From contig JAHLTZ010000008.1 in NCBI GenBank assembly GCA_025786725.1, positions 248,001-312,000 of the forward strand: 64,000 nucleotides of DNA. The letters are read 5' to 3'. Position numbers and translations under genes: made by a program. The notes beneath the pieces were generated by a model. It ran no database searches, was not told the origin of the DNA, and worked only from the letters and a program-made list of their open reading frames with translations. Of the stretch, positions 18,777 through 43,651 are shown piece after piece. This DNA is from Syncephalis fuscata S228. Lineage: Eukaryota > Fungi > Zoopagomycota. Positions within the stretch are counted from its first letter, which is position 1; the number at the start of each line of letters is the position of its first letter.

Positions 18777-19414
18777 TTTTGTTGCAGTAAAGATAAAGTC
18801 GGCTCTTTTTGCTTGTAACAATCTGGTACTAGTGTTATTTAGGTAAATGGACAATAAAGAATCAATAGAAATTTAATATGAAATAATGGAATAGAATAAA
18901 CAATTAATAAGCTATATTTGTATAGCTATAAATAAAACAAGTTAATAAGTCATAAAGCTTGATATTCATCATACTTACTGGCAATGTATCATATCTTATT
19001 CACCTACAATGATGCGGATCAGAGGTTACTTAAAATAGCGTTAACTAAACAAGATGGTTAGCCAGCGAGAGAGTAGGCACACAGTGCAATGTATGTCGGC
19101 TTGGTTGCGACAGCTGAAAGGGGAAGGAGTATACGTACTGGGATTGTTTAAATCTATTGTTGACCAAAGTAAACAGCATTTTTGTTATTGCTTGCCAACG
19201 GGCTTTTTTTCGGCTTGGTATTATGATTATGAACGTGGAGAATGTTATTGTATTTTTGTTTGTTAGCATTACTATTAATTACAATAAATTAAAAATACAT
19301 TAATATAGAATAGCATTTAATAAATTAATAAACATTAATGTCATTTAATTAACAGATTTGCACGTTGATTTGTATATAAATTCCATTCTATTCGTTGTTA
19401 TATACTTGTAATCA

Positions 19415-21089: not shown

Positions 21090-21414
21090 GATTTTATTAT
21101 TTCTACTGCAGTCAGTGGATTTAGACAGGCGTAGCAATCAAAGCGACGAGTTAAGATATTCGATAAGAGATAAAGCAAACAGTAATCGAATGAAAAGTAT
21201 AATAAAAATATTCAAGCAAACAGTAGTTGAATGAAATGATGGAAGCAAAGGATACAAGTTAAGATGAAGTAGCTAGAGAAAAAAGTTAACGAGCCCCTTT
21301 TGAAGTCATGGCCCTTGTTACATGGCGCGAGTTAATGCGTGGATATATCATATGATGCATTCCTTTTTGCCGCAATTCAGATTACTGCAAACAGGATTTA
21401 TCTAAATAGCTTTT

Positions 21415-24400
21415 ATTAAATGTTGCAAGCAGCATCTTTCATTTATAAAATAAATGTTTCATATATTTGACTTCCATTCACGCCAAATCGGCTAATAGAG
21501 AAATTTGATATTCTATATTCGGGCGATTTCCACGACTTCTCTTTTCTTGATGCTTTTAGATCTGATACTTCGATGAGGCCTAAAGACTCAGCTTCATTGT
21601 TGTCTTCAGTTTTTCTGATAGTAAGACAAGCTGGTGGCTTGTAAATTCGGCCAGTGCGCATATCAATAAACCAGTTCTTTTTGTATCTTCTACTAAATAT
21701 GTTGCATAAAGACCCAATAAACGGAGTAAGCTCAACATTAAATGGCACAGTAATCGAGCGTAGTAAATCCCCATTTCTAGCATCCAGTACATCAATTGTT
21801 TTACCACTATGAACAATAATTATTTTTTCACTGTATAATCCAGTAATAGTATTTTCAATTATAGGTCGCCTCCATAATATATATCCTTGATCGGAATTAT
21901 CAATTGGTTGTAATTGGCCGTAATCTCTAGCATCGAATAGTGATTGCGGTGAGGTATTCGATGCATCTTTTCCAAATACAAAGAAAAAAAGCAAGGTATC
22001 AAATGGATCGTCGCAATTGCTGCTTGAATCATAGTATGGATTAGCTACAGTGATTAGGCACATCTTTTCTGTGTATGTCCCTGCACCAACTATAGCGTCT
22101 GGCCAATATGGAATAGTAATTTGGCCCGATAATATTTCCTTACTCTTAGACCAACCCTTATGAGCATCAAGTAGCTTCCATTGAATGTAGAGTAATGGAT
22201 TATCATTGCCAGCTATTTGCGAGTCTTCATTAGCAATAAATGTGGAAGCAAGGTCAAATGCTCCAACGTCGTGTACTATTGCGCATGTTAGAAATTGACA
22301 CTTATCGTGAGAGGCAAACTGAATACAAGATGATGTTTCATCATTGTATAGTTTTACTCCTTCTATCCATTGGCCTTCATCTAAATTAATTAAATCAAAT
22401 CGTCGGTATGAATATTGTGCATAGTAAATACAAAAGAGTGCCCATTCATTACAAGTATCAGAAAAATGGCTAAACTCTTCTCTTCCCCTGTTGTCATATC
22501 CATGTCCAAGATAAATAACATTAGGTAATGAGCTGCCAGCATTGGGCCATACTAGAATGGCTGTTCGCTGGCTACTTTTTCGTTCATTCGAAGCTGCAAT
22601 GGTTGCTGATGCAGTAGAGTGCTCATCTAACGTATTAAAAACTTTAGATGCACTTTCTTTAATGTGTTGTGCTTTTAATTCATTTATGTTTACTAGTTTT
22701 AACGACATTAGTAAATATTAATATAATTATTGGTATTAATAATGACTAGTCACCTATTGGGTCTCCAATATCCACAAGCCTGACATCATTATACGTCATT
22801 ATATTAACATAAGCCATGACAAACTGATGTTGTTCACTGGCAGAAAAGACTACATGACTACAATCAAATAATGCCGGTGGTATAGGTATTGCCAATTCTT
22901 TCCACCCTGGTTCCTCACCACCGTACTCATTCTTTTTGCTGAATAAATTGTGTTGAATTGACCAAGTTTTATATCCTCTTTTGTCTGATACCAATGTATA
23001 CCAAGGGTTTACGTCGGCTAGCTCCATTTGAATGTTTCCATCAGCCGGTAATTGATATATCTGCTTTTTGAATCGACCCGCCATAAAATTGCGCTCAATT
23101 TGTCGACGTCGCTGATAAGCGTAAAACCATTGAGTAGCATCAAAACTAGAAACGGATTTTAAATAGCTAGCAAGCAATGCATATTCATTATTGACATTAC
23201 TAACATTTGTACCGATAGGTGCTACTAAATGTTCCTGTTTTGTCTGATTTACATCAAGCGTAGACTCTTTTACTTCTGTTGTAGCATTGATGTGCCAATT
23301 ATACCACATAAGCCATTCTTGTTCGCGCCAATCGCCCAATGAAAATATTTTCTTGTATTGTCGTTCCCAATAATCTGGCCTATCAACTATTGTCTTGTAA
23401 ATAAATCGACAACTGGCGGCAAAGAGTACTAGTTCTTGGCCATCCACAAATCGACACAAATACAGTAAAATGTCATGGCTTTGCCATAGGCGTTCATTAT
23501 TCATAGTTGAAGACATGGCTAGCTAGAAATAACTGTACTAAAATTAATACACGATAGAGAGAACGAATAGTGTTGGATGCAAGTAAAACAAAAAGGTCTT
23601 GCACGACTTTGAGTTGCTTTATTCTATCCATAGTGCAGTGGTTACACAGCTATGTGATTGTTGACGAATGGATATTGTTATTATTTATTTACAAGTAAAA
23701 CAAATACATTGAGATTACATAAAGTCGCGGTAGGCTGTCTGGAAATTAAGCAGCATTACGTCATTGTGTATCGATTGCTATAATATTAAATGATTCACAG
23801 TATTTTATGTAATCAACAAATGCTATTCAACTTAGTAATAAATATAAGAATCCATGTACTTTTAAAATTAAACTAGAAATGAAATGAAGCATAGCGCACG
23901 CATATTAATGTAATAGCATTAGCATAATTAAATACGACAATTAACTAAATAAATCACTAAATTATTATTAAAACAGATGGTGTGACTGTGATTGTATTGC
24001 ATATACGTGGTCAGTATATTAAGATATTATAAAAAGGAACGTATTCAACTAATAAAAGAAATTATATATATATAACATTATAACGCAAAGCAACATATTA
24101 TGATAGATAGAGCGTATGCGTATGATGATTGTATTGTAAGTGAGCCGTCATTTCAAAGTTCAAGGCCTTTGAAGGTTGCACGATATATGTAAATCAAATA
24201 CACGTCTAGCTTACGTTCATTGTAACTACGCATTATGATCATCTATCTTTTAGCAACGTATTATTGATATGAGTAGTTCTTGACAATCTAGCTATTGTCC
24301 TTTTCTTGTCTTATTTACTTATACACAATGATTCATATCCCTATACTTGTTATTGGACGTGTTGCCGCATTTGCCGACAGCGACTCACTTGTTCTGCTTT

Positions 24401-24696
24401 CATGCTGCAGTAAATGGCTGCGGTATTGCGTTAGCCAACATAACAATATCTGGCATCAGCGATATAGGCAGTATTACAATCTTGCTGACGGCAACGAAAT
24501 AAAATGGCTAGCCTGGTATGTGAAGACAGTGCGTGCATCGAAACTGTTGGCATTACAAACCAAGAAAACAGCTAGCATTACTCAATTGAGCAATCAGCAT
24601 ATCGAATGGTTTCATGCATTTTGCTATCGGCGTGCCACTGACGCAAACTGGCTTAAAAGCGCACCATATCCAGTTAAGGATTTAACGGAAGAAGAA
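21415..24696. repeat. Left arm of a ~3.3-kb near-perfect inverted repeat (partner 39740-43020)
   Basis: Identical translations of gene A and the gene B N-terminus, and matching intergenic sequence on opposite strands. Coordinate sums stay at 64435/64436, i.e. one net 1-bp indel. Confidence 0.97.
21443..23516 (-). CDS. Lineage-specific F-box protein, type A copy 1 (2 exons, intron 22693-22753)
   Basis: N-terminal F-box-like HDILLYLCRFVDGQELVLFAASCRFIY...YWERQY. A GT-AG intron with a TACTAAT branch point joins the 256-aa and 421-aa ORFs in frame. The beta-rich C-terminus (TIDVLDARNGDLLRSI) suggests a degenerate propeller. Confidence 0.8.
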
Positions 24697-25977
24697 CCAG
24701 ATAATACACGTTCTATTATATTGCAACGAATTGTTTATCATCATACTGACATGCAGAAATGTTTCATTGCTGAGCAGTGTCAGCCAATAGGAGAGACATT
24801 TACCAAACGATTTTGGCGTTTGTGCAGATTATTTTACGATAATGTAGACTATGTATCATACGCAGAACGATGCCTGATATCAGACAGATTTGTGGTAACT
24901 ATTAGTAGACAAAGAAATAGTGCAAATCTTATTCGTGGAAAAACATGCACTATTTCTATCTGGCCAGTAAATCGAATTTCAATCATGCGACCGCGTCAAT
25001 TCTCCTGTTTATGCGACATTGTAAGCATTAGTGGCCGATGGATGATAATTAATTATTCAGAATTAGCAGACGGGAAAACAAGTGAATCTAATATAATAAC
25101 AACAACTCGCGTTTTTGATCTTGCTAATGGTCAAATGTGCATGGGTACTATTACGAATTATCAAGGAAAAGTTTTTTTACTGAGAGTTACTGAAGAATCA
25201 GTAATTATATTTAGCAGATCGTTGCATTACTTAAATACTAATACCACACTTAAATGGAAGGTGTGGGAGTTTTCAAATTGCCATCTAGGATATGGTCCGC
25301 GCTGTCTAATGCAAGGAGAAATTCGCTTTGAAAGACTTGGAGGTTTTAAAACTACTGTCAAAAAACTAGATAATAGTCGGGTTTTAATTGAAAATCACTT
25401 AAGATTAGGTGGTAATACGTTAAACAAAAATAGACAAGGTGAAATAAGTTTGGCAATGATTTCAACAGAATGCGGCTATTCGAATGCTTGCATTAAAGAT
25501 GTAAAGCCCATCTGGACACGTAGCGATTGTCTTTATGGCACGATACCACTATTTGGTTCTAACCGCATTCTTGTTATATCTGAAAGTGGATGGACGATTT
25601 GCAGCTCAATTGATGGCACTATAATAGCACGCATAGATGTAGAAAATTTAGCTTCGGTGCTTGAAGATTCTCATTTGCTAGATACAAGCATGTATACCAA
25701 TTTTTTTTCATTATATATGGGAAGATTCGTTCTTTATAAGTCTACGCACAATAACACATTTGTAGCCGTGGATTTAATTAATACAAATCGTACTAGAAAT
25801 TTGGGCATGACAAATTCAAAGTACTTGTACGAAAAGTTATATATACATCCGGATATTATTACAAGATTCGACCGTCTAATTGAGAATCGTTTATTACTAA
25901 ATGATAAATTTAGCACGAGAAATGCAATGTTGATAGTAGATAACGAAGATTATAAAATAATAGATTTGTCGCTTTAA
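24328..25977 (+). CDS. Lineage-specific F-box protein, type B copy 1 (intronless, ~549 aa)
   Basis: ATG at 24328: MIHIPILVIGRVAAFADSDSLVLLSCCSKWLRYCV...IWHQRY (F-box-like); beta-rich C-terminal region. Confidence 0.8.
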   Translation: MIHIPILVIGRVAAFADSDSLVLLSCCSKWLRYCVSQHNNIWHQRYRQYYNLADGNEIKWLAWYVKTVRASKLLALQTKKTASITQLSNQHIEWFHAFCYRRATDANWLKSAPYPVKDLTEEEPDNTRSIILQRIVYHHTDMQKCFIAEQCQPIGETFTKRFWRLCRLFYDNVDYVSYAERCLISDRFVVTISRQRNSANLIRGKTCTISIWPVNRISIMRPRQFSCLCDIVSISGRWMIINYSELADGKTSESNIITTTRVFDLANGQMCMGTITNYQGKVFLLRVTEESVIIFSRSLHYLNTNTTLKWKVWEFSNCHLGYGPRCLMQGEIRFERLGGFKTTVKKLDNSRVLIENHLRLGGNTLNKNRQGEISLAMISTECGYSNACIKDVKPIWTRSDCLYGTIPLFGSNRILVISESGWTICSSIDGTIIARIDVENLASVLEDSHLLDTSMYTNFFSLYMGRFVLYKSTHNNTFVAVDLINTNRTRNLGMTNSKYLYEKLYIHPDIITRFDRLIENRLLLNDKFSTRNAMLIVDNEDYKIIDLSL

Positions 25978-27088
25978 TTGCTATAAAATTATTGTATTTT
26001 TATTATTCATTAAATTACTTGTACAATTATTTCATATTGTAGATTGCAATCATCAATGCTATACAACATGACAATGATTAATTAATTACCACCATTAAAT
26101 ATTAATACAGTATAATTTATTATGCTGCTGTTATTGTTTAAGCTGAAAAGCAAAGTATATATTTATTATAACTACAAAAATAAATAACAAAATGAGATAT
26201 TACGACAATAAAATAAGCACGTATGCAATATTATAATTTAAATTTATTTAATATTGTTAGTAATATGCTATGTATTGTTACAACACCAGTGGTGCGTTGA
26301 TGTAACATTAATCAAGCAACCAAGAAATGAGAGAAAATATAAGAGATAGCTTAATTAGATGTTTTAGTATTAATTCAATAATGCTTATCAATATTAAATA
26401 GTGTACAAATATAGCTTGAATTAGCAGACTTTTAAGTCGCAGCTGTATAAATTCTCACAATAGGCTAATGAAAATTGGTGTAAGAAAAGTGTATATTTAT
26501 TATTGCTTGGGCTACATTATTAAGTAATCATAATATTGTTGAAACTATAATAAATATATATAGCATCCAATATGTGATGGAAAATTCTAAACACAATAAA
26601 TGCAACAAAACTTAATTAAAACTTTGTTTATTAATGTGATTTAGTGAATTGTAACAATATAACAACAAAAGAGTAATACAATGCTATATTGGTGTATGAT
26701 AGTTATAAATACATTCTAAGCTTCTTCTTAACCGCAATTAAGAAATAAACAAATAGCTTTTATTAATAATATATAATCAGTAGATGGTATACTGATAAAC
26801 AATATAATAAACAAATAATACCTACTTGAAGAGTAAAAATATATTATAGAGCAACATATTATGATAGATAGAGCGTATGCGTATGATGATTGTATTGTAA
26901 GTGAGCCGTCATTTCAAAGTCCAAGGCCTTTGAAGGTTGCACGATATATATAAATCAAATACACGTCTAGCTTACGTTCATTGTAACTACGCATTATGAT
27001 CATCTATCTTTTAGCAACGTATTATTGATATGAGTAGTTCTTGACAATCTAGCTATTGTCCTTTTCTTGTCTTATTTACTTATACACA

Positions 27089-28735
27089 ATGATTCATATC
27101 CCTATACTTGTTATTGGACGTGTTGCCGCATTTGCCGACAGCGACTCACTTGTTCTGCTTTCATGCTGCAGTAAATGGCTGCGGTATTGCGTTAGCCAAC
27201 ATAACAATATCTGGCATCAGCGATATAGGCAGTATTACAATCTTGCTGACGGCAACGAAATAAAATGGCTAGCCTGGTATGTGAAGACAGTGCGTGCATC
27301 GAAACTGTTGGCATTACAAACCAAGAAAACAGCTAGCATTACTCAATTGAGCAATCAGCATATCGAATGGTTTCATGCATTTTGCTATCGGCGTGCCACT
27401 GACGCAAACTGGCTTAAAAGCGCACCATATCCAGTTAAGGATTTAACGGAAGAAGAACCAGATAATACACGTTCTATTATATTGCAACGAATTGTTTATC
27501 ATCATACTGACATGCAGAAATGTTTCATTGCTGAGCAGTGTCAGCCAATAGGAGAGACATTTACCAAACGATTTTGGCGTTTGTGCAGATTATTTCACGA
27601 TAATGTAGACTATGTATCATACGCAGAACGATGCCTGATATCAGACAGATTTGTGGTAACTATTAGTAGACAAAAAAATAGCGTAACCTTTGTTCGTGGA
27701 AAAACATGTATTATTTCTATCTGGCCAGCGCATCTAGTTTCGGTCATGCGACCGCGTCAGTTTTCCTGTTCATGTGATAATGCAAGCATTCGTGGCCGCT
27801 GGATGATAGTTAATCATTTTGAGATTGCAGACAAAGTTATAGATAAATACATTGTATCAGAAAGGACGCGTGTTTTCGATCTTGCTAACGGTCAACAATG
27901 TATGGGTACTATTGCAACTTACGAAGGAGAGACTTTTTTATTGAGAGTTACTGAAAAAGCAGCAACTACACTTAGTAGAACATTATATCACTCAAACACC
28001 GCTACCACACTCAAATGGAAGGTATGGGAGTTTTCGAATTGTCATCTAGAATATGGTCCGCGCTGTCTAATGCAAGGAGAGATCCGCTTTAAGAAATCTG
28101 ATGACTCTGCAATTTTTGTTAGAAAACTAGATGATAATCGAGTTTTAATTGGAAATAATTCGCAGCTAGTTAATATATTGAGCGAAAATAGGGCAGATGA
28201 AATAAGCCTAGCCATGATTTCAACAGAATATAAATACTCAAACGTTTGCATTAAAAATGTAAAGCCCATCTGGACACGTAACGACCGTCTTTATGGCACG
28301 ATACCACTATTTGGTTCTAATCACATTCTTGTTAAATCTGAAAGTAGATTGGTGATTCACAGCATAATCGATGGTACTATAATAGCACGCATAGATGTAG
28401 AAACTTTAAGTTCGGCGCTTAATGTACAGCATCTGCTAGATATAGATAGTTATAATAACCTTCTTTCATTATATATGGGAAGATTCGTTCTTTTTGAATC
28501 TATGCACGACAAAACATTTATAGCAGTGGATTTAATTAATCCAAATCGTACTAGAAATTTAGGTATAGCAAATTCAGAGTATTTGTACAAAAAATCATTT
28601 ATACATCCAAATGTTGTTATAAGCTTTGATCACTTGCTTAGTAATATTTTATTACTAAATGATAATTTTAGCACAAGAAATGCGATGTTAATGGTAGACG
28701 GTGAAGACTATAAAATAATAGATTTGTCCTTTTGA
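27089..28735 (+). CDS. Lineage-specific F-box protein, type B copy 2 (tandem paralogue)
   Basis: Near-identical to B1 from about 240 bp upstream to about codon 195 (24089-24913 vs 26850-27674), and clearly divergent afterwards. Confidence 0.8.
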   Translation: MIHIPILVIGRVAAFADSDSLVLLSCCSKWLRYCVSQHNNIWHQRYRQYYNLADGNEIKWLAWYVKTVRASKLLALQTKKTASITQLSNQHIEWFHAFCYRRATDANWLKSAPYPVKDLTEEEPDNTRSIILQRIVYHHTDMQKCFIAEQCQPIGETFTKRFWRLCRLFHDNVDYVSYAERCLISDRFVVTISRQKNSVTFVRGKTCIISIWPAHLVSVMRPRQFSCSCDNASIRGRWMIVNHFEIADKVIDKYIVSERTRVFDLANGQQCMGTIATYEGETFLLRVTEKAATTLSRTLYHSNTATTLKWKVWEFSNCHLEYGPRCLMQGEIRFKKSDDSAIFVRKLDDNRVLIGNNSQLVNILSENRADEISLAMISTEYKYSNVCIKNVKPIWTRNDRLYGTIPLFGSNHILVKSESRLVIHSIIDGTIIARIDVETLSSALNVQHLLDIDSYNNLLSLYMGRFVLFESMHDKTFIAVDLINPNRTRNLGIANSEYLYKKSFIHPNVVISFDHLLSNILLLNDNFSTRNAMLMVDGEDYKIIDLSF

Positions 28736-28908
28736 TTGCTATTGCTTAAATTGATAAACACAACGTATACTTATTGTAACTACAAAAATAATTAACTAAA
28801 TGGTTACAACGACAATATAGTAAATGTTTACTTAGTATTCTGTTTTGTATTATAAATGCAAATCTATTTAATATTACAAGTAATAGACTGTGTGTAATTA
28901 AAGATGGA
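28648..28908. repeat. Inner inverted repeat (~260 bp; B2 3' end plus downstream), partner 38290-38551
   Basis: The coding end LLLNDNFSTRNAMLMVDGEDYKIIDLSF* and about 170 bp of 3' flank are near-identical to the reverse complement of 38290-38551. Confidence 0.93.
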
Positions 28909-29110
28909 CACCAGGCAAACTGATAATGGTTTATTTTGGTGGTTAAATAAATCCCTGTTATAATTTTACTTGAATGATTCAGTGACATCAACCAATGATC
29001 GTGTTATTTCGTCAGTTTGTTTACTTTCTTATTCACTCGTCGCTTTCTTATTCTTTCTCTTTCTTTTACTACTTATTAGGCGCGGTTTGATTGCCGCTAC
29101 TACAATCAAC

Positions 29111-30468
29111 ATGAATTATACATCAAATCTAGCGAAACATTTTACCAATACACCGCATCAGCGGCGAACACGCCTATCATTGGCCGCGCGTACATTTCAA
29201 CAACAAGATCAGCAAGAACAAGATCTAGCTGAAAATACATTAGCACCGCGACCTTCTTATGGACGTCCGAATAAACGTGCACGTCAAACAAATTTTACGG
29301 GCGATAAGGCGCTGGCCCGACAATCTGACTATAATAAGCTTAGTAGTGATCCGTTGTCAATCTTTGCACCTCAACTAGAACAATTATCGCGATCAGTAAT
29401 AGCGCTAGAAAGTAATTTCCAACATTTAGGTGGTATTAATGAAGCACTTACTACATTTAATGATGCATTTGATACTTTTCTTCGAGCAATGTCAATCAAT
29501 GCTCAGTGTGTTATATTCCCTGAAGTAAGTAGTTGCTATAATGCAGTGTAGATTTATTAATAGCTATCAGGCTCCCAATCCTTTATCATTTAAGCGACAG
29601 CCACAAGAACAGCCAGGTGTGTGGAATATGTTTATTCTGTAGAACTATTTAGTAATACAATATATAGAAGATGCAAATATGCTAGGCGCTAGTATTTATC
29701 CATCAACAGCGCAAACAGTCTTGTCATCTAGTGCTGAACCTGTTAATAATGATGAGGCTCATATTTGGCTAATTTAAGTTATGCACAGGATATTTCAACT
29801 GGAACATTTCTTGATAATACATTTGCATCGACTGAAGAAAGTGTAAAGTCAAAAATACCAGTTAGAAAGAAGCGTGCTGCTAAAGCTGCTCCGCCCGTAA
29901 GTCATTAATTTACATTAAAAAATGATCAAATATGTATATTAACTATAGATGATAGCCTAAACCATTCCCTATGAAAAAGCTTATTGAGGGATTACCGCTA
30001 CGTTATCGTGATAGTGTAAGTCTAGCTATTATTTGATACAGTCGTTGCTATAAAATAACAATAACAATAACAATGATATTAGCCACATCGCGATACAATT
30101 GAAATTATTGTAAAGGCACTTCATAGTGATACCGAGGGACTGTATCCTTTATTAATGAGCTATAGATGTGCACCATACAACATTTGTAGTTTATACTTGA
30201 CCATTTTTGTTATAGTTACATCCACCAGATTGTCAAGCTAGCAGACGTGGCTCGGCATCGATGTATAGAATATATGAACGCACTTGTACACAGTAAGAAT
30301 GTATTGAAGATATCGCGCAAGGTGCGACTTATTTATTAGCGCATACATCATGTGTGCCTTACACTACACTGTATGTGACCTGGCTAACACTGACGGATAT
30401 TGCAATAGGGTTTTCTTTACCAACTCGATCCGGTCAAGTATCCGCCTAACAAGATGCACCGTCGCTAG
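29111..30468 (+). CDS. DAM1: DASH complex subunit Dam1 with additional C-terminal globular domain
   Basis: PQLEQLSRSVIALESNFQHLGGINEALTTFNDAFDTFLRAMSINAQCVIFPE/AP matches the Dam1 core. Multi-exon, TAG at 30466-30468; one intron near 29757-29788 is unclear. Confidence 0.85.
30142..30215 (+). other. U12-type (minor) GT-AG intron in DAM1
   Basis: Donor GTATCCTTT, branch-like TACTTGAC at 30194-30201 about 15 nt before the AG; splicing is in frame (DTEGL|YIHQIV). Confidence 0.75.
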
Positions 30469-31216
30469 CTACCCTCCACAAATGATGGGCCGTTTTTATA
30501 GATTTCCGGCTGTATGATTATTGTATGGGTATATTGAGCGTGTTTGTAATAAAAACAAAGACTCGCATATAAGAGAAAAAGGCCAGCGTGTGGTAATGAG
30601 AAGGAAGGAGAGAAGGAAAATACTGATACAGAAACGAAAACACAAAAAAAAGAATGAAAGAATGAAAACGCCAACGAAACGATATATGTTTGTATGGTGA
30701 AGATGATATAGGTGGTAATAGTAGAGCGAGTGGGAAAACAAAGAAGTATGGCGAAATTAGATTGGCACAAAAGGGCAATCCAGTCCAGTGCGTACCGCCA
30801 TAAGAACGAAGAACAGCAATACCAAAGTAGTAGACTATTGCGACGTGATCGGCACGCAGTGGGCCTTAATAGCGCTTTAGTGGAAAACACTCAAAATTAA
30901 ATAAAATATAGAGCGCTCATGTACACAAGGAGAAGGAGTGAAGAGAGTATAGTAATGATACTAGAGAGAAGTTGTGAAAAATAAATGATAGGATTTAAGC
31001 GTTTATGCTGTGTATATATGATGTGCATATATAGTGTAAATAAAAAAGTACTTTAGCAATTCAACGTGTCGATGATGGAAGAATAAAGAATAGTTGAGGT
31101 AGGAAAGTACAATTTTATACTATACATATACAGCCATACAAAACAAGCATAAATACTATTGTTTTTGTATAATTGCTGAAAGCTAACGAGGTGCATTGAT
31201 TGTACCGCCACCCCGC

Positions 31217-33733
31217 TTAAAATTCAAGCTTCATTTGCATTTGACCGCTGACGACGTCAAGTTGAATAGAGACGCGCATAATTTGCTCGTCGCTCATTTG
31301 GGTGATGGTTGAATCCTCGACGCGAATGACAATACCGCTTTCTGTCTTGCGAACGACATCATGTACCGATTCCGGTTGGATGTTTAGCTTTTCGCACAAA
31401 CTTAAACGCAGACTCTCTTCGGTTAATTCGTCGAGGTAGCAGGCACGGTAGAATACATCGCCAGGAATAAGTGCGTAAATACAGAGTGCTAATAAATAAT
31501 AAATGTTAATTAAATCGTCTAATAGTAACAAGTGCAATATAACTACTTACCAGCTGGTTTTGTACGAGGACGTGGTGTGTAGCTTGGATCGACATCGAGA
31601 GCAGTGCGCATAATCGATTGACGATCTTCAGGTGTAGCAGCCATGGTGGGCGAAGCAGCACCAACACTGCTGCTGCTAACACCGCTGTTGCCGTTGTTAC
31701 TGCTGCTCGTAGCACCGCCACCTAGAACATCAGTGCGTTGCAAATGAGCATCCGGCTCAACGTGCAACAATGCGTGACGTGCATTGACTGCATTTGGATA
31801 GACTTGTTCAAGCTCGGCCTGTTCAAATGGCTGAACGTCACGGGCAAACACTGTGACAGGGAAGGTAGGCGGCAATGTGTCAATGCTTGGCCCACCGCGT
31901 TGACCGTTGCTGACGCTGGCCTTGCCACGCATGCGAATCATTAACTTTTCGCGATGGCGCATATCATCCTTGTTCTTGCGCTCGGCACCTTTATCACGGA
32001 ACAATTTAACAGCAGCAAAGGCACGTTCGGAAGCAGAAGCATCCTCATTTGAATGATGATGGCTGCTGCCGCCATGGCTATTGCCACTACCTTCGCCTGT
32101 ATAGATATGGGTTTCAGCGTGGATACGCATTGGAATACCTTTTACACCTTTAACACGCGTAAATTCGGTAGATAAGCAGTTAAGGCGAATCTGAACTGTT
32201 GCACCCTTTTGGCCATACCAGCGAACACGTACACGATCAAATTCGTATACGCCCATAGGCTGGCCATTTTCGTTGGAAAGAGCAGCGCTATTGACTTGCT
32301 CGGTACGTTTCGTATCAGAGCTGGCTCCAGTTGCACTCACCACACCATTGCTACCGGAAACGTTAATTTCAATAGCGCGGGCGTGATTTGGCGATGATTG
32401 TTGGCCAAGCCAATGGCTCCAGTAGGTACTGGCCAATCGGCGATGTGCTTTCTCATGGAACATAATACGTACAACAGTTTCCATAAGACAATCCTCCTTG
32501 ATCGTGTCAGTCAGTGCTAGGTTATAGTACTGGCCTTTGTTAATATACGTAAGGAAGCCTTGTTCAACACGTTGAGCTGCAGCTGTGGGTGCATCAAGTA
32601 CAACAGTATAACGCATTTGTGGATCCGGCTATAATAGTGGTGTAATAATAATTAATAAAAATATTAATAAAATAGTATTAAATAATTAAATAATTAATGT
32701 TCCACACTTACCACTGGCATATTCATGTGATGTGACACCGAGTTCGACATGTCCATTTGCGTACCGCGTGGATCCATTGGGCTTCCCATGAAACTACTAG
32801 AGTTGCTCATAGATGGCGAATCGCTCATCAATGGCACGGGCGATCCTTGACTAAGACACGGACGGGAAAAATCCAGACGCTGCTGCATATTTGGTGTAAA
32901 TGACGGAACGACCGTCGAGTAAGTAGGAATAGAAAGATTTGGACTGCCTTCAGGCGTGGGCGGCTGTACCATATAGGGTGGTGTTACCACAGAGGAACCG
33001 AAGGCATCAAAGGCATGTACAATCGAATTGGGCGCGCAGTTGGTCGTAGAAATTGCTCGATATGAGGGAAGCATGGCCGCCGACATAGCACGCTCGTCAA
33101 CCTCGGCGGCGGCAGCGGCAGCGGCAGCAGCAGTTGCAGCGGCTTCATTTTCCGATCCTGGATATCTATCATCCCGGAAAGCAATATTAGTAAAGTGTAA
33201 AAAGCATTTTTGGTGTGTACAAAAATAGCAATTGTCACTGATGTAAATTCAGACTCCGTCCAATCCTTTGCTTATTCTTTCCTTCCTTTCTTTGTTCTCA
33301 GCAAACCTACCTTGATTCCATCTCTTCTAGATACTGGCGAACATAGTCGGGCTGGCTATCCCACCCCATGGCCGAATGAGGACCCGACATGGATGGCTCC
33401 ATGTGGCCAGCATGTTCGGGGCGCACCATGTAGCCGCTGTTATGTTGAAGATAAGGCGGAGTAGTGCGATTGCAGTCGTCGACTGAGCCGTTTACTGAAC
33501 CGTAGTGCGAGCTAGGCAGTAAATGGTTAAGCTGTTTTAATGTATATTGCGGCTCGACGTCAGAGAAAACAGAGTGTTGTCTAGAATAAATGAAATATTG
33601 ATATGAATACACAAAGGATAGAAATGGTTGATCGGTTGGTTAGATAACCGGATAGACTAAGACGAAGTGCACTTCACACCCATACAAAAGTGTCTATAGC
33701 TACTTACGTGAACTCGCGTGGCGAAGAAGCCAT
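31217..33733 (-). CDS. Grainyhead/CP2 (LSF) family transcription factor, 5 coding exons
   Basis: RYTVVLDAPTAAAQ...LTYINKGQYY, CLSTEFTRVKGVKGIPMRI, VKLFRDKGAERKNKDD; C-terminal FYRACYLDELT...LCEKLNI domain typical of GRH. ATG at 33733. Confidence 0.93.
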
Positions 33734-36104
33734 TGAAATAAACTAATAGATACTACTACGCAATAAAACGAGGGACAATAATATTAAAGAATAAAAGCAA
33801 GGTTGCTCTTACAGACTTAATAGTGTAGGCGAGAGTAAAAAAGGTGTGAATATGTGTGGATGTGTGGATGATGTATTTGCAGCACTAAAGTTCTGATCTG
33901 TGTGGGTGCGGCAAATGTGTGTGTAGTTTATACGAAAAGTGGTCAACGGAACCGAAGAAGGTTACACATGAATGGTGTGTATAGAATGTGTCGATAATGG
34001 CAATAAGAATGGCAAGGCGTTCTGGACCAATGTCGACTCACCAAACAATCAATGACGAAAATGGGAAAATGGTTTAGAAAGCAAACGAATCTTCCTGCCC
34101 AATCGAACAGCGTGCTACCATGCGTAGGCGATGAAGCGAATCAGAATGATGGATTCAACACAGACAGATAGACAGACAGATAGGTAGAGAAAGAGACAGG
34201 CAAAAGACAACAAGGAATTAGCACACACACAGAAGCGGACAGAAAGAGTAATAGTAAGATGGTAGATAGTGGTAGAGAAATGCACGCACGTACAACTGCA
34301 CGCAGTATTGCACCCGATGCAGATAGAAAGGGGGAAGTGAGAGAAAGAGCGAATAGGCACACGCACACGCACACACACGTCGAGATATACCAAGTATATC
34401 TATAGAATCAATAGGAGAAAAGAAACTAGATACGGTTACCAACAAGTAGTATAACGAGATACAAAGTGTTTTTATAGGCTATCTAGACAAGGCACGTGGA
34501 TTCAGGGAATGAAATGGTGTTATAACGAACACAAACACGGAGAAACTAATAATAACGACGGTGATAATAGAGTGGTGAGACGTGGAGAAATAGTTGCTAT
34601 CTTGGCAGGGACAACATGCTTTTAAACCTGCCGCAGATATCCCCACCGACCACGGGATGGATTGTACGAGGAAGGTGTTAAGGAAGTGCTCTGGCACTAC
34701 GCATTACTGAGTATGGGTTAAGGAGGCAGCAACAGCAGGCACTACCAATGGCGATGATGATGCTGCTACTGAAGGGTGGAATACATCAATGCCTGGGCTT
34801 ATTTTCACCTTGCGTGTGGTAGCCCATCCATCGCTGTCGCTGAAGCCACACCCCGCAGTTCCGTATTGCCGTGCGGTCGCCTACATTCTGCTACTATTGC
34901 CACTATCGCTACCGCGATAATGATGTCTAACATGGCAATTATGGTTGAATTGAGGAGCGCGTGACTTGCTGTAGACAGCGTGAAACGCCACGGCTACTTG
35001 CACCGAAAATTTGCAACAACGACGCGTGGGTTTACCTTTTTTGTCCATCTCTTTCAACCATTCGGTAGGAATTCATCAAACAAAGCAGTGATGATGCTGG
35101 TAACAGGACCATGTTGCAACGGCACCATTTCTTTCAAGTAAGTTTCTGGTCATGCTTCATTAACGGCGCCGCCAGTGTACCTAGTTGGGTTTCACTATAA
35201 CCATGCTAATAACAAACACATTTACAAGCATGTCTCGGTTAGTGGTGGAGGCACATGGCCGTACAAGTTTGCTTGATTAGCTTTTTGTTTGATCCAATAG
35301 TAGTTTGCTACTAAAAGAATAAACCAACATCTTCTATCAAATTATTCCAAGGCCTTTAAACTGGCCCATCCGCACTGTAAAGTGCAAAGTGCTTTAATCC
35401 AAAACTCTACCAAGCCTGTACATATCCCGTGTATCAGCATGTTAATAGAATGGTTTTGAAACATGATTCGGTTTATTTCAATGTTTCCTTGGTTCATCTA
35501 TTTAGAATACATAAACTATATTAAAAATAAACATGCTAATAGCGATACTAATATTAACCAGCGCTGCTTTGTTATTCTTTGTTTTTCCATACTATTACCG
35601 ACCTCAAAGGTACTTTTCTGTACACCTTCCATGCAAGATACGTCATTTACAGGCAAACGAAATGTTCCACGTGTAAGGTCATTCATTCGTCTTGAATTGT
35701 TGTTGTTATGCTTTAGTGATCGTGCACCGTGCTATCGCTCCTTGAATTGGCTCAATAGCAATGAGGGCGACTAGTCGACTGATGGTCGGACTGTTACGCG
35801 ATTACACCAAAAATTGCTACAATAACAATGATCATAATCATAGTAATAATAACAAACAATAGTACATGTATTCAATCATTTGATCAACATTTGGCCTTGA
35901 CGCATGACACGTGTTCATTGGTAAAATTCAATGAACAATGTAATGCCGGTCCTGTGTCTACAAAAGTATCAGTTGGCCACGCAGCTACTCTATAACATCA
36001 TTTTATGACATCATTTTATTAGTTTGTATTCATAGCATGATCAATTTATTTCAAACAAATGCAGCATTACCATCATATGATTATGTTTACGCAGGGTATG
36101 CTAT

Positions 36105-36116
36105 ATGTGCGTGTGT

Positions 36117-36155
<39 letters not shown>

Positions 36156-36162
36156 TGTATGT
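36105..36162 (+). repeat. (TG)n microsatellite
   Basis: Imperfect run of more than 20 TG units, seen directly. Confidence 0.95.
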
Positions 36163-38289
36163 ACAGCCTTGAACGACCTTGTCGCATGTTTCAACGGCTG
36201 CATAAGCACTCCATGTTTCATTTTGCTCAGTCGCAGTTACAGTTTTTGTCCATCTGTTCACGACTGGGGACCACGATCATTGGACAACACTGTTCCTGGG
36301 ACAATGAGAAAAGCAAGCGAGATCTCCATCTATGACCGAGTAGATGGACATGTGGACACGAAAAAGCCCTTTTGCACTCTTTGTCTTTCTTGCTTATCGC
36401 TTGTTCAATAAAGACAGACGACGCGGAATACATCGTCACAAAAGGTTAGCCATTGGCTAAAAGGTTCTTTTGACCGGGTGGCAAAGCACCAATCAATTAT
36501 CATTTACTACTAGCGTGTTTGATCGATCACACTTTTACGAGTTCCTTATTTGGTAGTTTTAATTCATTTGCTTTTACTTCGCGCCGCGACAACAATTATT
36601 CCAACCACGCAGAAAATGGATTCATCGCTGATGAACAGACAGACGGAATAGCCAACCAACGAGAAGCCGAGGCCCCACGAGAGACAGCACGAGCAGCATT
36701 AGGTGTGTTCCATGCAAACGGCCATGGGGTGTTCATCGCAAAAAACCTGTTTTGTGGTACAACGTCTGGCATGCGGAATTGATCGAATGAAGAATTTTGA
36801 TGAATGAATAAATGTTGTTCATATTAGTTAGTTATGATGCTACTAATGGCAATACTGGTGCGATAAAATCAGTGCAATGCTGACCACATGCTTAATGATG
36901 CGATTTGCCCCACTAAACTTGTTACTTGTAGCGATTCCACGCAGTTGCATCGTGTGCAGTCAAACTAGAATAGAGACTACCGCATGGATGGAATGGTAAA
37001 GCGTATGCAAGGCGCCATTTTCGATCAGTTTCAAAAATTGGCCATACCTATCCACTCGTACTCATAACCACACCGGTTATATGGCTACTAAAAGTTGGCA
37101 GATGTTATTATAGGAAAAAGATAAACAATCCCAAAGTACGCAATACAGGACTAGACAAGTGGCAAAGGCATAACCGGCTATTTTGCGATTAATTAGTTTT
37201 TGGTGCTGCAAAGCTGTTGTGGTGCTGCTTGCGAGGAAAGGCGGACTGCCATTGATGACAGAGATGGACTATTGATATCGAGTCGTGGGCGTGCGAGCGT
37301 TCGACAATGCACGACCAATGCTTGTGCAGAGGCTGTGATAGCTGTGTTCCTTAGCACAATCGTACTTGACTTATCGGGTGCTACTATGGACAATAAAAAT
37401 TTATGATCATATTTGTGGAGTTTACTGATATGAAAAGTGGACAATAAGCACCTTCCCAGCTACAACAAAGAATGCTGCAGCAAGGCAGCCGCACAAGGCG
37501 AGTGTCACCATTGCTGGTGCCCGCGTCACATTATTATTTCGGATGGAGAACAGGACTCTGCTATCGGCGTTGATGCCTAGCCGTGCGTGCAAAAAAGTTG
37601 CTTCCGCTAAACACCGATGAAGTTTTTCAAAGATATCAAAGCCAATGCAATGTTTTCCAAGAGAAAGAATGCTCAACCTTCGAAGGAATTGCAATTAGCC
37701 TTATGGGGTGGATAAATGGCAGCTTTTGCGTTTGAAATCAGCAGAACATTCATCACAATTTGTTGATTTGTACGTAAAAATATAGTATAGATTTCTGAAA
37801 TCCATCACATTGCGATTTCATATTTTATTGCAAGTTTGGAACTTGATTACAGTGTACATTTTAATCTGATAGTTCTCATATTGTTCAGTGTTCTAATTTT
37901 ATACTTGCTAAACTTTTGACTAGTTAAATATCTGTCAGCATAAATAACATCGTTACAATTATTAGCTATTCTGTAATTAGTAAATTAAGCTATTTTTCAT
38001 TCAACAAAACAATTATTTGTTTATTAGCAAAAAACAGTATAATTACACATACACCGTATTGCCTCAAGTCTGAATAGTCATATGCAAGCCTGTATTTATT
38101 CAATGTACAGTAAGATTACATTTTTATACACATTTAATGTATGCAATAACTAGATTGAGCTGTTCATGATAATATACTGCATCATATTGCACTCCATGTT
38201 AGCCAAATAAAATATTTTTGATATTTAATTATTGTCATATTATTCGCCTTTAAAGTTTACTTTATACTAAATAAATGATGCTAGCCACA

Positions 38290-38551
38290 TCCATCTTTAA
38301 TTATACACAGCCTATTACTTGTAATATTAAATAGATTTCGCATTTATAATACAAAACAGAATACTAAGTAAACATTTACTATATTGTCGTTGTAACCATT
38401 TAGTTAATTATTTTTGTAGTTACAATAAGTATACGTTGTGTTTATCAATTTAAGCAATAGCAATCAAAAGGACAAATCTATTATTTTATAGTCTTCACCG
38501 TCTACCATTAACATCGCATTTCTTGTGCTAAAATTATCATTTAGTAATAAA
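38290..38551. repeat. Inner inverted repeat, right copy (partner 28648-28908)
   Basis: Reverse complement of the B2 3' end and flank, with a few substitutions at the distal end. Confidence 0.93.
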
Positions 38552-40108
38552 TGATCTTTAATCATATAGTTAAATCTTGTAACAATATATGGATGTTCAA
38601 ACGATTTTTTGTACAAATACTCTGAATTTGTTATGCCTAAATTCCTAGTACGGGTTGGATGCATCGGATCTATTGCTATAAATGTATTGTCGTATTTAGA
38701 GCTATAAATAACAAATCCTGCAATATATAATGAAAAAAGATTAGCATATTTATCTATATCTAGCAGATATTGTACTTTAAGCATTGAGCTTAAAGTATCT
38801 ACATTGGTGTGTGCTAGTATAGTGCCATCGATTGAGTTGTAAATCGTCCATCCACTTTCAGATATAACAAGAATGCGGTTAGAACCAAATAGTGGTATCG
38901 TGCCATAAAGACAATCGCTACGTGTCCAGATGGGCTTTACATCTTTAATGCAAGCATTCGAATAGCCGCATTCTGTTGAAATCATTGCCAAACTTATTTC
39001 ATATTCTCTATTTTCGTTTAACGTATTAACATTAAACGGGGAATTATGTTCGACTAAAACCCAATTGCCATTAAGTTTTTTAACAAGAATTTAAAGTCTT
39101 TGGACGTTTTAAAGCGGATTTTTCCTTGCATTAGACAGCGCGGACCATATCCTAAATAGCGATTTGAAAACTTCCATACATTCCATTTGAGTGTGGTAAT
39201 GGTATCTGAGCGATGCAACGATTTGCTAAATATAATTGCTGATTCTTCAGTAACTCTCAATAAAAAAAGTTCGCTTTGACAAGTTGTAATAGTACCCATG
39301 CACATTTGACCATTAGCAAGATCAAAAACGCGAGTTGTTGTTATTATATTAGATTCATTGTTTCCGTCTGCTATTCTGAATAATTAACTACCATCCAGCG
39401 GCCACTAATGCTTGCAATGTCGCATAAACAGGAGAATTGACGTGGCCGTGTGATTGAGATTCGATTTACTGGCCAGATAGAAATAGTGCATGTTTTTCCA
39501 CGAATATGATTTGTACTATTTCTTTGTCTACTAATAGTTACCACAAATCTGTCTGATATCAGACATTGTTTTATCTGAGATTTACAGTTTATATCATTGT
39601 GAAATAATTTACGCAAGTACCAAAATCGTTTAGTAAATGTATCTCCTATTGGCTGACATTGCTCAGCAATGAAACATTTATGTATGTCAGTATGATGATA
39701 AACAATTCGTTGCAATATAATAGAACGTGTGTTATCTGATTCTTCTTCCGTTAAATCCTTAACTGGATATGGTGCGCTTTTAAGCCAGTTTGCGTCAGTG
39801 GCACGCCGATAGCAAAATGCATGAAACCATTCGATATGCTGATTGCTCAATTGAGTAATGCTAGCTGTTTTCTTGGTTTGTAATGCCAACAGTTTCGATG
39901 CACGCACTGTCTTCACATACCAGGCTAGCCATTTTATTTCGTTGCCGTCAGCAAGATTGTAATACTGCCTATATCGCTGATGCCAGATATTGTTATGTTG
40001 GCTAACGCAATACCGCAGCCATTTACTGCAGCATGAAAGCAGAACAAGTGAGTCGCTGTCGGCAAATGCGGCAACACGTCCAATAACAAGTATAGGGATA
40101 TGAATCAT
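38464..40108 (-). CDS. Lineage-specific F-box protein, type B copy 3 (mosaic; apparent frameshifts at ~39085 and ~39357-39373)
   Basis: Three consecutive ORF fragments (256, 83 and 175 aa) are colinear with B1/B2. All breaks are missing bases in short homopolymers, so the gene is probably intact, although a recent pseudogene cannot be excluded. Confidence 0.72.
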
Positions 40109-43020
40109 TGTGTATAAGTAAATAAGACAAGAAAAGGACAATAGCTAGATTGTCAAGAACTACTCATATCAATAATACGTTGCTAAAAGATAGATGATCA
40201 TAATGCGTAGTTACAATGAACGTAAGCTAGACGTGTATTTGATTTACATATATCGTGCAACCTTCAAAGGCCTTGAACTTTGAAATGACGGCTCACTTAC
40301 AATACAATCATCATACGCATACGCTCTATCTATCATAATATGTTGCTTTGCGTTATAATGTTATATATATATAATTTCTTTTATTAGTTGAATACGTTCC
40401 TTTTTATAATATCTTAATATACTGACCACGTATATGCAATACAATCACAGTCACACCATCTGTTTTAATAATAATTTAGTGATTTATTTAGTTAATTGTC
40501 GTATTTAATTATGCTAATGCTATTACATTAATATGCGTGCGCTATGCTTCATTTCATTTCTAGTTTAATTTTAAAAGTACATGGATTCTTATATTTATTA
40601 CTAAGTTGAATAGCATTTGTTGATTACATAAAATACTGTGAATCATTTAATATTATAGCAATCGATACACAATGACGTAATGCTGCTTAATTTCCAGACA
40701 GCCTACCGCGACTTTATGTAATCTCAATGTATTTGTTTTACTTGTAAATAAATAATAACAATATCCATTCGTCAACAATCACATAGCTGTGTAACCACTG
40801 CACTATGGATAGAATAAAGCAACTCAAAGTCGTGCAAGACCTTTTTGTTTTACTTGCATCCAACACTATTCGTTCTCTCTATCGTGTATTAATTTTAGTA
40901 CAGTTATTTCTAGCTAGCCATGTCTTCAACTATGAATAATGAACGCCTATGGCAAAGCCATGACATTTTACTGTATTTGTGTCGATTTGTGGATGGCCAA
41001 GAACTAGTACTCTTTGCCGCCAGTTGTCGATTTATTTACAAGACAATAGTTGATAGGCCAGATTATTGGGAACGACAATACAAGAAAATATTTTCATTGG
41101 CGATTGGCGCGAACAAGAATGGCTTATGTGGTATAATTGGCACATCAATGCTACAACAGAAGTAAAAGAGTCTACGCTTGATGTAAATCAGACAAAACAG
41201 GAACATTTAGTAGCACCTATCGGTACAAATGTTAGTAATGTCAATAATGAATATGCATTGCTTGCTAGCTATTTAAAATCCGTTTCTAGTTTTGATGCTA
41301 CTCAATGGTTTTACGCTTATCAGCGACGTCGACAAATTGAGCGCAATTTTATGGCGGGTCGATTCAAAAAGCAGATATATCAATTACCGGCTGATGGAAA
41401 CATTCAAATGGAGCTAGCCGACGTAAACCCTTGGTATACATTGGTATCAGACAAAAGAGGATATAAAACTTGGTCAATTCAACACAATTTATTCAGCAAA
41501 AAGAATGAGTACGGTGGTGAGGAACCAGGGTGGAAAGAATTGGCAATACCTATACCACCGGCATTATTTGATTGTAGTCATGTAGTCTTTTCTGCCAGTG
41601 AACAACATCAGTTTGTCATGGCTTATGTTAATATAATGACGTATAATGATGTCAGGCTTGTGGATATTGGAGACCCAATAGGTGACTAGTCATTATTAAT
41701 ACCAATAATTATATTAATATTTACTAATGTCGTTAAAACTAGTAAACATAAATGAATTAAAAGCACAACACATTAAAGAAAGTGCATCTAAAGTTTTTAA
41801 TACGTTAGATGAGCACTCTACTGCATCAGCAACCATTGCAGCTTCGAATGAACGAAAAAGTAGCCAGCGAACAGCCATTCTAGTATGGCCCAATGCTGGC
41901 AGCTCATTACCTAATGTTATTTATCTTGGACATGGATATGACAACAGGGGAAGAGAAGAGTTTAGCCATTTTTCTGATACTTGTAATGAATGGGCACTCT
42001 TTTGTATTTACTATGCACAATATTCATACCGACGATTTGATTTAATTAATTTAGATGAAGGCCAATGGATAGAAGGAGTAAAACTATACAATGATGAAAC
42101 ATCATCTTGTATTCAGTTTGCCTCTCACGATAAGTGTCAATTTCTAACATGCGCAATAGTACACGACGTTGGAGCATTTGACCTTGCTTCCACATTTATT
42201 GCTAATGAAGACTCGCAAATAGCTGGCAATGATAATCCATTACTCTACATTCAATGGAAGCTACTTGATGCTCATAAGGGTTGGTCTAAGAGTAAGGAAA
42301 TATTATCGGGCCAAATTACTATTCCATATTGGCCAGACGCTATAGTTGGTGCAGGGACATACACAGAAAAGATGTGCCTAATCACTGTAGCTAATCCATA
42401 CTATGATTCAAGCAGCAATTGCGACGATCCATTTGATACCTTGCTTTTTTTCTTTGTATTTGGAAAAGATGCATCGAATACCTCACCGCAATCACTATTC
42501 GATGCTAGAGATTACGGCCAATTACAACCAATTGATAATTCCGATCAAGGATATATATTATGGAGGCGACCTATAATTGAAAATACTATTACTGGATTAT
42601 ACAGTGAAAAAATAATTATTGTTCATAGTGGTAAAACAATTGATGTACTGGATGCTAGAAATGGGGATTTACTACGCTCGATTACTGTGCCATTTAATGT
42701 TGAGCTTACTCCGTTTATTGGGTCTTTATGCAACATATTTAGTAGAAGATACAAAAAGAACTGGTTTATTGATATGCGCACTGGCCGAATTTACAAGCCA
42801 CCAGCTTGTCTTACTATCAGAAAAACTGAAGACAACAATGAAGCTGAGTCTTTAGGCCTCATCGAAGTATCAGATCTAAAAGCATCAAGAAAAGAGAAGT
42901 CGTGGAAATCGCCCGAATATAGAATATCAAATTTCTCTATTAGCCGATTTGGCGTGAATGGAAGTCAAATATATGAAACATTTATTTTATAAATGAAAGA
43001 TGCTGCTTGCAACATTTAAT
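39740..43020. repeat. Right arm of the ~3.3-kb inverted repeat (partner 21415-24696)
   Basis: See left arm; identity ends at ...gcaacatttaat|ctattg. Confidence 0.97.
40920..42992 (+). CDS. F-box protein type A copy 2 (intron 41682-41742; GGG>GG deletion at ~41099)
   Basis: Translation identical to A1 apart from a single missing G (TCATTGGGCG vs TCATTGGCG). Confidence 0.78.
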
Positions 43021-43651
43021 CTATTGAACATTATGATGGATGGTGAATGACATCAGTCATCAAATACTCATTATCATAGATTTATTATCCAGTATGCATA
43101 TATCATTCTCACTATATGCTCATATTGTTATATATTACTATATTACTGAAGAGATAACAGCAAGTAAATTTAATACAATTATCATGCTGGCAATCGTATA
43201 CATAAAGTAGTACGACCTACTACTATTGAGATTACACGCACTGTTGCCAGTATAACTTTTAATGGTATTCATAGCAGAAGTATGGCATATAAATGATATT
43301 TGCAGTGTATGTTTAAATGACATAAAAACAGACTAAAAATGCATTTACTATGTCAATACCAAAGACCGTAGTAATGAAGGTAGTTAAAAAAGCAATGCAA
43401 GGAGGTTATATAAGTAGTGTTTGTATCTAACTAGTAGTCAGTCAACTATTGACACTATCTAAGTAGTATCTATTGTATATACTTGTACATGCTATAGATA
43501 TATACTGTCATATAAAGAACGTGTGATGACGTAGATTGTATGTTGTTAATATGAGTGAATTAAATACTGATGTCAGTTAATACCAAAACTACTCATTATT
43601 ATTATTACTATTACCGTTATTACTATTATCATTCTACTTTATTCCAACATC

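Follow-up and report, generated by a model that had tools for sequence, protein, structure and literature searches.

Inversion of a chromosomal segment by recombination between flanking inverted repeats is known from budding yeasts. In Saccharomyces cerevisiae, the 24-kb flip/flop (FF) region of chromosome XIV is flanked by a continually homogenized 4-kb inverted repeat of two gene pairs of the Centroid family (Salzberg et al. 2022, PMC9731477). This family is fast-evolving and frequently duplicating, the region re-inverts on the evolutionary time scale, both orientations have been recorded within species as well as between them, and the inverted repeat is conserved across the genus (PMC9731477). 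In Ogataea polymorpha and Komagataella, the MAT flip/flop comprises a 19-kb region that is inverted by homologous recombination between inverted repeats, without a site-specific recombinase; in Ogataea, switching is induced by nitrogen starvation, and its read-out is the silencing of the one MAT copy that lies near the centromere (PMC5720833). In the Drosophila melanogaster group, inverted duplications at inversion breakpoints result from staggered breaks (PMC1885836). Here, we describe a locus of the mould-parasitizing fungus Syncephalis fuscata in which a block containing DAM1 and a Grainyhead gene is enclosed by inverted copies of two types of F-box-like genes, named A and B, and is inverted relative to three relatives. 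The analyzed window comprises 64,000 nucleotides (contig C350, positions 248001-312000) of a 29.4-Mb assembly of 371 contigs, and all positions refer to this window unless a contig is named.

A first-pass annotation of the window had claimed the layout A1(-) B1(+) B2(+), core, B3(-) A2(+), with outer arms identical except for one 1-bp indel, a second inverted repeat further inside, and a 9.4-kb unique core with DAM1 and Grainyhead. Self-comparison confirmed the layout and both repeats, the arm identity base by base, and Pfam matches were obtained for both core genes. The features of the locus are as follows:

19396..21090, minus strand: SLC35F6-like nucleotide-sugar/DMT transporter, left flank; collinear with relatives (tblastx to L039, L042, L043 and L044)
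21415..24696: outer part of the left arm; differs from 43020-39740 by a single 1-bp indel
21443..23516, minus strand: A1, ~670 aa, with an F-box-like module at its N-terminus and a single GT..AG intron of 61 nt (22693-22753)
23517..24327: A-B intergenic region, 811 bp by gene coordinates, divergent, inside the identical arm; presumed shared promoter
24328..25977, plus strand: B1, 549 aa, intact and intronless; F-box-like N-terminus and beta-propeller-like C-terminus; in the public annotation
27089..28735, plus strand: B2, 548 aa, intact and intronless; tandem copy of B1
28648..28908: inner inverted repeat, left copy; 3' end of B2 plus 173 bp of 3' flank, adjoining the core
28909..38289: unique core; DAM1, Grainyhead/CP2, then a stretch poor in genes in which one small element is conserved (36107-36163)
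about 28970-30468, plus strand: DAM1 (Pfam DASH_Dam1, E=1.8e-13)
about 31150-33650, minus strand: Grainyhead/CP2 (GRH; Pfam CP2, E=2.9e-41; GRHL1_C, E=1.7e-14)
38290..38551: inner inverted repeat, right copy; 3' end of B3 plus flank
38464..40108, minus strand: B3, composed of B1-like, of B2-like and of private tracts; frame broken by two deletions of 1 bp each, near 39374 and 39092
39740..43020: outer part of the right arm; inverted counterpart of 21415-24696, from which it differs only by the 1-bp indel
40920..42992, plus strand: A2, second copy of gene A, frameshifted in the assembly by a 1-bp deletion (CC for CCC, near 41100); coordinates mirrored from A1
43011..43108, plus strand: solo terminal-repeat-like piece of an abundant element resembling a miniature inverted-repeat transposable element (MITE), directly adjoining the right arm on its outer side
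43670..46419, plus strand: start of a LAA1/HEATR5-like gene, right flank; collinear with relatives (tblastx to L039 and L044)

The sole indel between the outer arms reads CCC at 23335-23337 on the left and CC near 41100 on the right. The whole inverted repeat extends over ~4.6 kb (21415-25984 versus 43020-38457) with 95.6% identity over 4577 nt, and the identity falls sharply inward from position 24697. The full arms are 12.5 kb apart, including the unique core. B1 (24089-25984) and B2 (26850-28742) are tandem copies with 87.6% identity and a period of 2761 bp, and the match between B2 and B3 (26850-28908 versus 40347-38290) has an identity of 87.7%. At the inner end, 28648-28859 and 38551-38340 are perfectly identical over 212 nt, and the identity stays at ~97% out to 28908/38290. 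Because this tract spans the 3' ends of B2 and B3 and continues into their 3' flank, it constitutes a second, inner inverted repeat that directly borders the unique core. As in flip/flop regions, near-identical inverted repeats thus bracket a unique, gene-bearing segment. No tRNA genes were found near the arms.

The FF region of S. cerevisiae chromosome XIV is the closest analogue. In both cases a unique multi-gene segment lies between near-identical inverted repeats of ~4 kb formed by two genes of fast-evolving families, gene conversion occurs, and a dedicated recombinase is missing. The differences are that one orientation is seen in one S. fuscata assembly, while no inverted repeat is present in the relatives that have the other orientation; that the gene families are unrelated, F-box-like/beta-propeller genes in S. 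fuscata versus Centroid sporulation genes in yeast; and that two of the S. fuscata arm genes are frameshifted.

A comparison of gene order with related species had been proposed in the first-pass annotation, which had argued that recombination between the arms could flip the interior. The neighborhoods of the Grainyhead and SLC35F6-like orthologues in relatives were compared with the window by tblastx. In agreement with the argument, the flanks were found to be collinear and the DAM1-GRH core to be reversed in three relatives:

Metagenome contig L039, flanks: 214-5252 matches window 13437-21044, and 12684-14900 matches window 43670-45914, both in the same orientation
Metagenome contig L039, core: 8014-12383 matches window 36163-29348 in the opposite orientation
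Thamnocephalis sphaerospora (L044): flanks collinear; order LAA1-DAM1-GRH-SLC35F6...NifU, core in the opposite orientation
Syncephalis plumigaleata (L042): left flank SLC35F6...NifU collinear; order DAM1-GRH-(6 kb)-SLC35F6...NifU, core in the opposite orientation; the locus ends before LAA1

The order in S. fuscata is SLC35F6-[A1 B1 B2]-DAM1-GRH-[B3 A2]-LAA1, and the gene orders indicate that SLC35F6-GRH-DAM1-LAA1 is the ancestral state. Among the relatives available, S. plumigaleata is closest to S. fuscata (75% identity in the CP2 domain of GRH), and Thamnocephalis belongs taxonomically to another family of the Zoopagales; its neighboring gene that matches the right flank is annotated as Laa1_Sip1_HTR5. 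Since Thamnocephalis belongs to another family and the relatives are uninverted, the most parsimonious position of the inversion is the lineage of S. fuscata, and the comparison dates it to after the split from S. plumigaleata. The left breakpoint lies between 21090 and 29342 and the right breakpoint between 36163 and 43670, and it is exactly these intervals that the arms fill. No A or B homologues were detected at the loci of the relatives (tblastn, E<0.01), nor was a flanking inverted repeat present there. The core is thus found in one orientation in the single S. fuscata assembly and in the other in three relatives that have no inverted repeat. For S. pseudoplumigaleata the contig ends at SLC35F6, in Piptocephalis synteny was absent, and scans of metagenomes for pieces of DAM1 and LAA1 gave no match. 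The metagenome contig L039 contains two tandem SLC35F6-like copies (2267-3709 and 4005-5252) compared to one in S. fuscata.

The three B genes carry a clear record of gene conversion. Perfectly identical tracts of 645 nt (B1 and B2), of 708, 161 and 72 nt (B1 and B3), and of 507 and 212 nt (B2 and B3) are embedded in sequence that is otherwise 64-85% identical. For every B pair the longest concordant runs exceeded those of 10,000 of 10,000 permutations (p<=1e-4). B3 equals B1 up to position 24696, at 25083-25154 and at 25440-25600, and it equals B2 at its 3' end. The permutations thus bear out the earlier description of B3 as a mosaic that is B1-like outside and B2-like inside, and the perfect tracts likewise agree with the presumption that homologous recombination or gene conversion is the engine at this locus. 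The synonymous divergence (dS) between B1 and B2 is 0 over the first 180 codons and 0.49 over the rest; therefore, the constant N-terminus of the local B copies results from recent conversion and not from constraint alone. The promoter and the first 123 codons (24328-24696) are identical in B1, B2 and B3. A paralogue located ~90 kb away on the same contig has some of the same patches, with 96-98% identity. Beyond the common N-terminus, the identity of B3 is 0.84 to B1, 0.81 to B2 and 0.79-0.81 to dispersed paralogues. As its interior is about equally far from the local and from the dispersed copies, B3 looks like an old family member of which the outer part was homogenized later. On its outer side the arm ends only ~20-28 bp beyond the A stop codon, about where the homology of the family ends. 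The tracts, the permutations and the dS contrast together show that the arms were homogenized by gene conversion and are not merely young, and to judge from these patterns homologous recombination is clearly active at the locus. Two other explanations of the variation were rejected. Mutation resembling repeat-induced point mutation does not fit, because the transition/transversion ratio is ~3 in the B1-B3 as well as in the B1-B2 comparison and G>A changes are only mildly in excess. For the variable half of B, the ratio of nonsynonymous to synonymous substitution rates (dN/dS) is 0.41, which does not fit positive selection overall.

The explanation that we favor, by a modest degree of belief over doubt, is a lineage-specific, repeat-bounded inversion, i.e., a region of the flip/flop type with arms that are homogenized by gene conversion. 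Two oppositely oriented units, each with A and B head-to-head, would flank the conserved DAM1-Grainyhead block. Ectopic homologous recombination between these units would repeatedly overwrite them, with non-crossover outcomes homogenizing the 3.28-kb tract and the shorter tracts, and at least one crossover-type resolution would have flipped the core from its ancestral order. The arms would accordingly predate and mediate the inversion, and the region may re-invert on the evolutionary time scale. A second inverted repeat with a B-like gene on the same contig (see below) fits this explanation as well. The inversion is most likely a neutral by-product of gene family expansion and concerted evolution, not a generator of diversity. 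Read in this way, the locus represents a concrete, polarized inversion in an early-diverging fungus that is tied to inverted copies of an expanding, lineage-specific gene family under gene conversion. It would be an independent case, outside the budding yeasts, of the mechanism known from the S. cerevisiae FF region, and it allows a direct test of whether such regions keep re-inverting.

Several points weigh against this explanation. The core orientation rests on the assembler, as there is one S. fuscata assembly and the Logan contigs do not span an arm. No sign of re-inversion or of orientation polymorphism was found, and no mixed-orientation signal was present in these contigs, which could not have revealed one. 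The relatives have no A or B genes at either breakpoint, so the order of events, first the units and then the inversion, is reconstructed and not observed. The 100% identical arms would equally fit a very recent one-step inverted duplication. Lastly, an RNA contig differs from the arms at three sites, and the arm sequences may therefore be slightly over-homogenized in the assembly. With the orientation resting on one assembly, the sequence comparisons indicate that the inversion in S. fuscata is real, repeat-bounded and of a kind already known in yeast.

The main rival, which we consider unlikely, is a one-step origin. A single rearrangement, by staggered breaks or by replication template switching, would have produced the inversion and the duplicate arms at once by copying an A-B unit from one breakpoint to both ends, and the inverted repeat would be a scar and not the cause. 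The lack of A and B genes at either breakpoint of the relatives fits this scenario, as does the identity of the outer 3.28 kb, which would be expected for a young duplication, and staggered breaks are a documented source of inverted duplications at inversion breakpoints (PMC1885836). However, in its C-terminal half B3 is no closer to B1 and B2 than to paralogues on other contigs, and a fresh copy would need several later conversions from elsewhere to become so patterned; the arm stops at the limit of gene family homology and not at an arbitrary point; and conversion is frequent at the locus and explains the identical tracts on its own. At the Drosophila breakpoints as in S. fuscata, a fixed inversion is bounded by inverted copies of a sequence that is single-copy or absent in relatives, but the Drosophila duplications are usually short, arbitrary and of the same age, whereas the S. 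fuscata arms are whole gene units in which old tracts are mixed with recently converted ones.

A more far-reaching version of the recombination model is also rather improbable in our view. It assumes an active flip/flop polymorphism, with both orientations coexisting among isolates or among the nuclei of one coenocytic mycelium, and an A-B family that repeatedly seeds kilobase-sized inverted repeats, which would drive structural rearrangement and local suppression of recombination. A second inverted repeat is indeed present ~100 kb away on the same contig (C350:150762-152897, minus, versus 167303-169442, plus), with arms of 2.1 kb and 99% identity that are ~14.4 kb apart and each contain a B-like gene. 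Direct segmental duplications of 92-96% identity were also noted near this second repeat (C350:163000-165768 versus 137329-140121, 75717-78508 and 85246-87546). A sequence of ~570 bp at C350:165936-166512 occurs in more than 40 copies with 86-94% identity over many contigs and is either a dispersed repeat or a conserved segment of a gene family.

The reading frames and transcripts bear on the question of whether the assembly itself could be at fault. Three of the five genes have intact frames in the assembly; A2 is shifted by its one deletion and B3 by its two, and all three deletions of the right arm are located at short homopolymers. Apart from its deletions, B3 has no in-frame stop over ~549 codons, and its public annotation apparently covers just a 245-aa N-terminal piece. 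Real frameshifts are more likely in B3 than in A2, because those of B3 lie in diverged sequence. These right-arm frameshifts should be regarded as defects that need to be checked before A2 and B3 are called pseudogenes. The intron of A1 is confirmed by a 2082-nt RNA contig (run X1) that skips exactly 22693-22753, and the frame remains open across the splice. At the indel site this RNA contig of A reads CCT, unlike the CCC and CC of the two arms, and it differs also at 21529 and 21602. The mismatches at 21529, 21602 and 23337 could be copy-specific single-nucleotide polymorphisms lost during polishing, another allele or strain, or an error of the contig. Transcription across the B N-terminal region is strong and includes B3-type bases. 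As B3-type bases are present in both the RNA and the DNA contig sets, the B gene on the right is a real, separate copy, and it is probably transcribed.

An assembly artefact is given little credence. It would imply that the core orientation was mis-resolved across the identical 3.28-kb stretch, or that the outer part of one arm was copied by the assembler, and that the true locus is static and uninverted or contains a single A-B unit. The perfect identity of the arms could be explained in this way, and 1-bp deletions at short homopolymers, as in all three right-arm defects, are typical of long-read consensus errors; the CCT of the RNA contig points in the same direction, and many small contigs of the assembly duplicate parts of large ones. 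Against this stand the B3-specific bases in independent RNA and DNA contig sets, an 820-kb contig that continues through both arms into conserved collinear flanks, the anchors that the inner 1.3 kb, which is diverged, and B2, which is unique, provide for each arm, and the absence of an alternative contig for the region in the assembly. With regard to redundancy in general, the small contigs C17, C18, C59, C355, C353, C41 and C16 gave match scores equal or nearly equal to those of C168, C112, C310, C361, C46, C201 and C223 and may be haplotigs or redundant assembly.

The first-pass annotation had also suggested a shufflon-like mechanism for varying the substrate-binding domains of the F-box proteins, while noting that the window contains no recombinase. 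The latter observation holds for the whole contig. In a recombinase scan of the genome, Phage_integrase matches were found on other contigs only and Resolvase matches were not found, so that no dedicated recombinase encoded on the contig is available to act on the repeats. The six Phage_integrase matches are in open frames of 540-991 aa, possibly belonging to Crypton- or DIRS-like elements, and are located at the following positions:

C34:6043-6534, Phage_integrase domain
C201:365965-366456, Phage_integrase domain
C344:44838-45329, Phage_integrase domain
C90:125599-126096, Phage_integrase domain
C312:60572-61069, Phage_integrase domain
C314:27597-28094, Phage_integrase domain

In a shufflon, one expressed constant segment is joined to alternative silent C-termini. 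The S. fuscata locus resembles bacterial shufflons and invertases (Rci, Hin/Gin) in that inverted repeats bound a segment beside variable C-terminal coding parts. It differs from them because it has neither a recombinase nor short crossover sites nor a single constant expressed 5' segment, and its repeats are kilobases long instead of tens of base pairs. Crossing over within the identical 3.28 kb leaves the gene products as before, since all B copies have the same promoter and N-terminus. The F-box gene products are thus unchanged by the inversion, and DAM1 and GRH are intact in either orientation. Chimeras arise only from crossover or conversion inside the diverged C-terminal half, which is ordinary ectopic gene conversion. 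A contig that seems to mix B1 and B3 bases was not counted as a recombinant, because it can be explained by graph merging at k=31. The Ogataea MAT flip/flop is likewise a recombinase-free inversion between inverted repeats in a fungus, but no regulation, read-out or MAT genes are evident at the S. fuscata locus. Programmed or high-frequency switching of the shufflon or Ogataea MAT type, in which regular core flips or swaps of B C-termini would vary the F-box receptors or regulate DAM1 and GRH, is therefore very improbable: the repeat geometry permits inversion, the B N-terminal region is strongly transcribed, B3-type bases included, and the A/B family is large and fast-evolving, but neither a tyrosine nor a serine recombinase is encoded on the contig, inversion yields no new product because every B copy comes with the same promoter and N-terminus of its own, two of the genes (B3 and A2) have frameshifts in the assembly, and the variable half with its dN/dS of 0.41 is not diversifying overall.

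The assignment of A and B to the F-box proteins is indirect. Direct Pfam scans of A and B yielded no F-box at E<0.01; the best match was F-box-like with E=0.15 on the N-terminus of A, and nothing was obtained for B. Pfam WD40 matches were also absent from both. The N-terminal modules of A and B are homologous to each other (BLASTP, E=1e-8), and a profile of this module matched 123 representative proteins. When 71 of these were scanned with Pfam, 32 had an F-box-like match (best E=5.5e-10) and 12 an F-box match, and many members of the family escape Pfam. In the wider family, the F-box-like helices are followed by a conserved linker (D..E..WL..Y ... WF.AY..R...E..WR.G), which resembles the one between F-box and propeller in Fbw7/Cdc4-type proteins. 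The nearest protein-language-model clusters were all F-box clusters (0.88-0.89), a result that serves only as a lead.

The AlphaFold model of B1 had a mean predicted local distance difference test (pLDDT) score of 58.8, and only its beta-rich C-terminal two thirds were usable; the N-terminal module modeled alone was of low confidence (pLDDT 45). A Foldseek search with the B1 model retrieved beta-propellers, including beta-TrCP and FBXW11, with E~1e-6 and low template modeling (TM) scores. A B-family profile matched nothing among the PDB sequences at E<=10. A and B share with proteins of the FBXW type (Cdc4/Fbw7/beta-TrCP) the N-terminal F-box-like helices, the linker (WF.AY..R....NW/F..G) and a beta-rich, propeller-like domain; in contrast to these proteins, they have no Pfam F-box or WD40 match, and the propeller is not recognizable as WD40 by sequence. 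A and B are probably F-box-like receptors with a propeller-like domain, with the F-box label being transitive via the profile and Skp1 binding putative. The initial designation as five F-box genes is thus probable as far as the transitive profile evidence goes, whereas a direct Pfam call is missing and the frames of only three of the five are intact in the assembly. For annotation, this means that A and B would be divergent F-box-like receptors that are missed by Pfam.

The family is large in this genome, with at least ~15 A-like and at least ~30 B-like copies at 66-90% nucleotide identity. A head-to-head A-B pair is also present on contig C79 and, judging from match positions, on C24 and C279. 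A search with full-length B beyond S. fuscata retrieved just two proteins, one from S. plumigaleata (30% identity) and the other from a metagenome. A and B thus form a large, rapidly expanding family that is confined to Syncephalis and a few relatives. A sequencing run from 2019 with the same species label (X5, 33 million letters) contained essentially none of a 5.9-kb stretch of the locus, and it may represent another organism or strain, or the locus may be absent.

In the left flank, an open reading frame at 19662-20273 within the SLC35F6-like gene matches Pfam Nuc_sug_transp/UAA/EamA. The element of ~95 nt at 43011-43108 is found a second time in the window, at 10729-10815, and has hundreds of copies with 80-94% identity in the genome. 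On many contigs the copies often form inverted pairs 500-700 bp apart, which is the pattern of the terminal repeats of MITE-like transposons.

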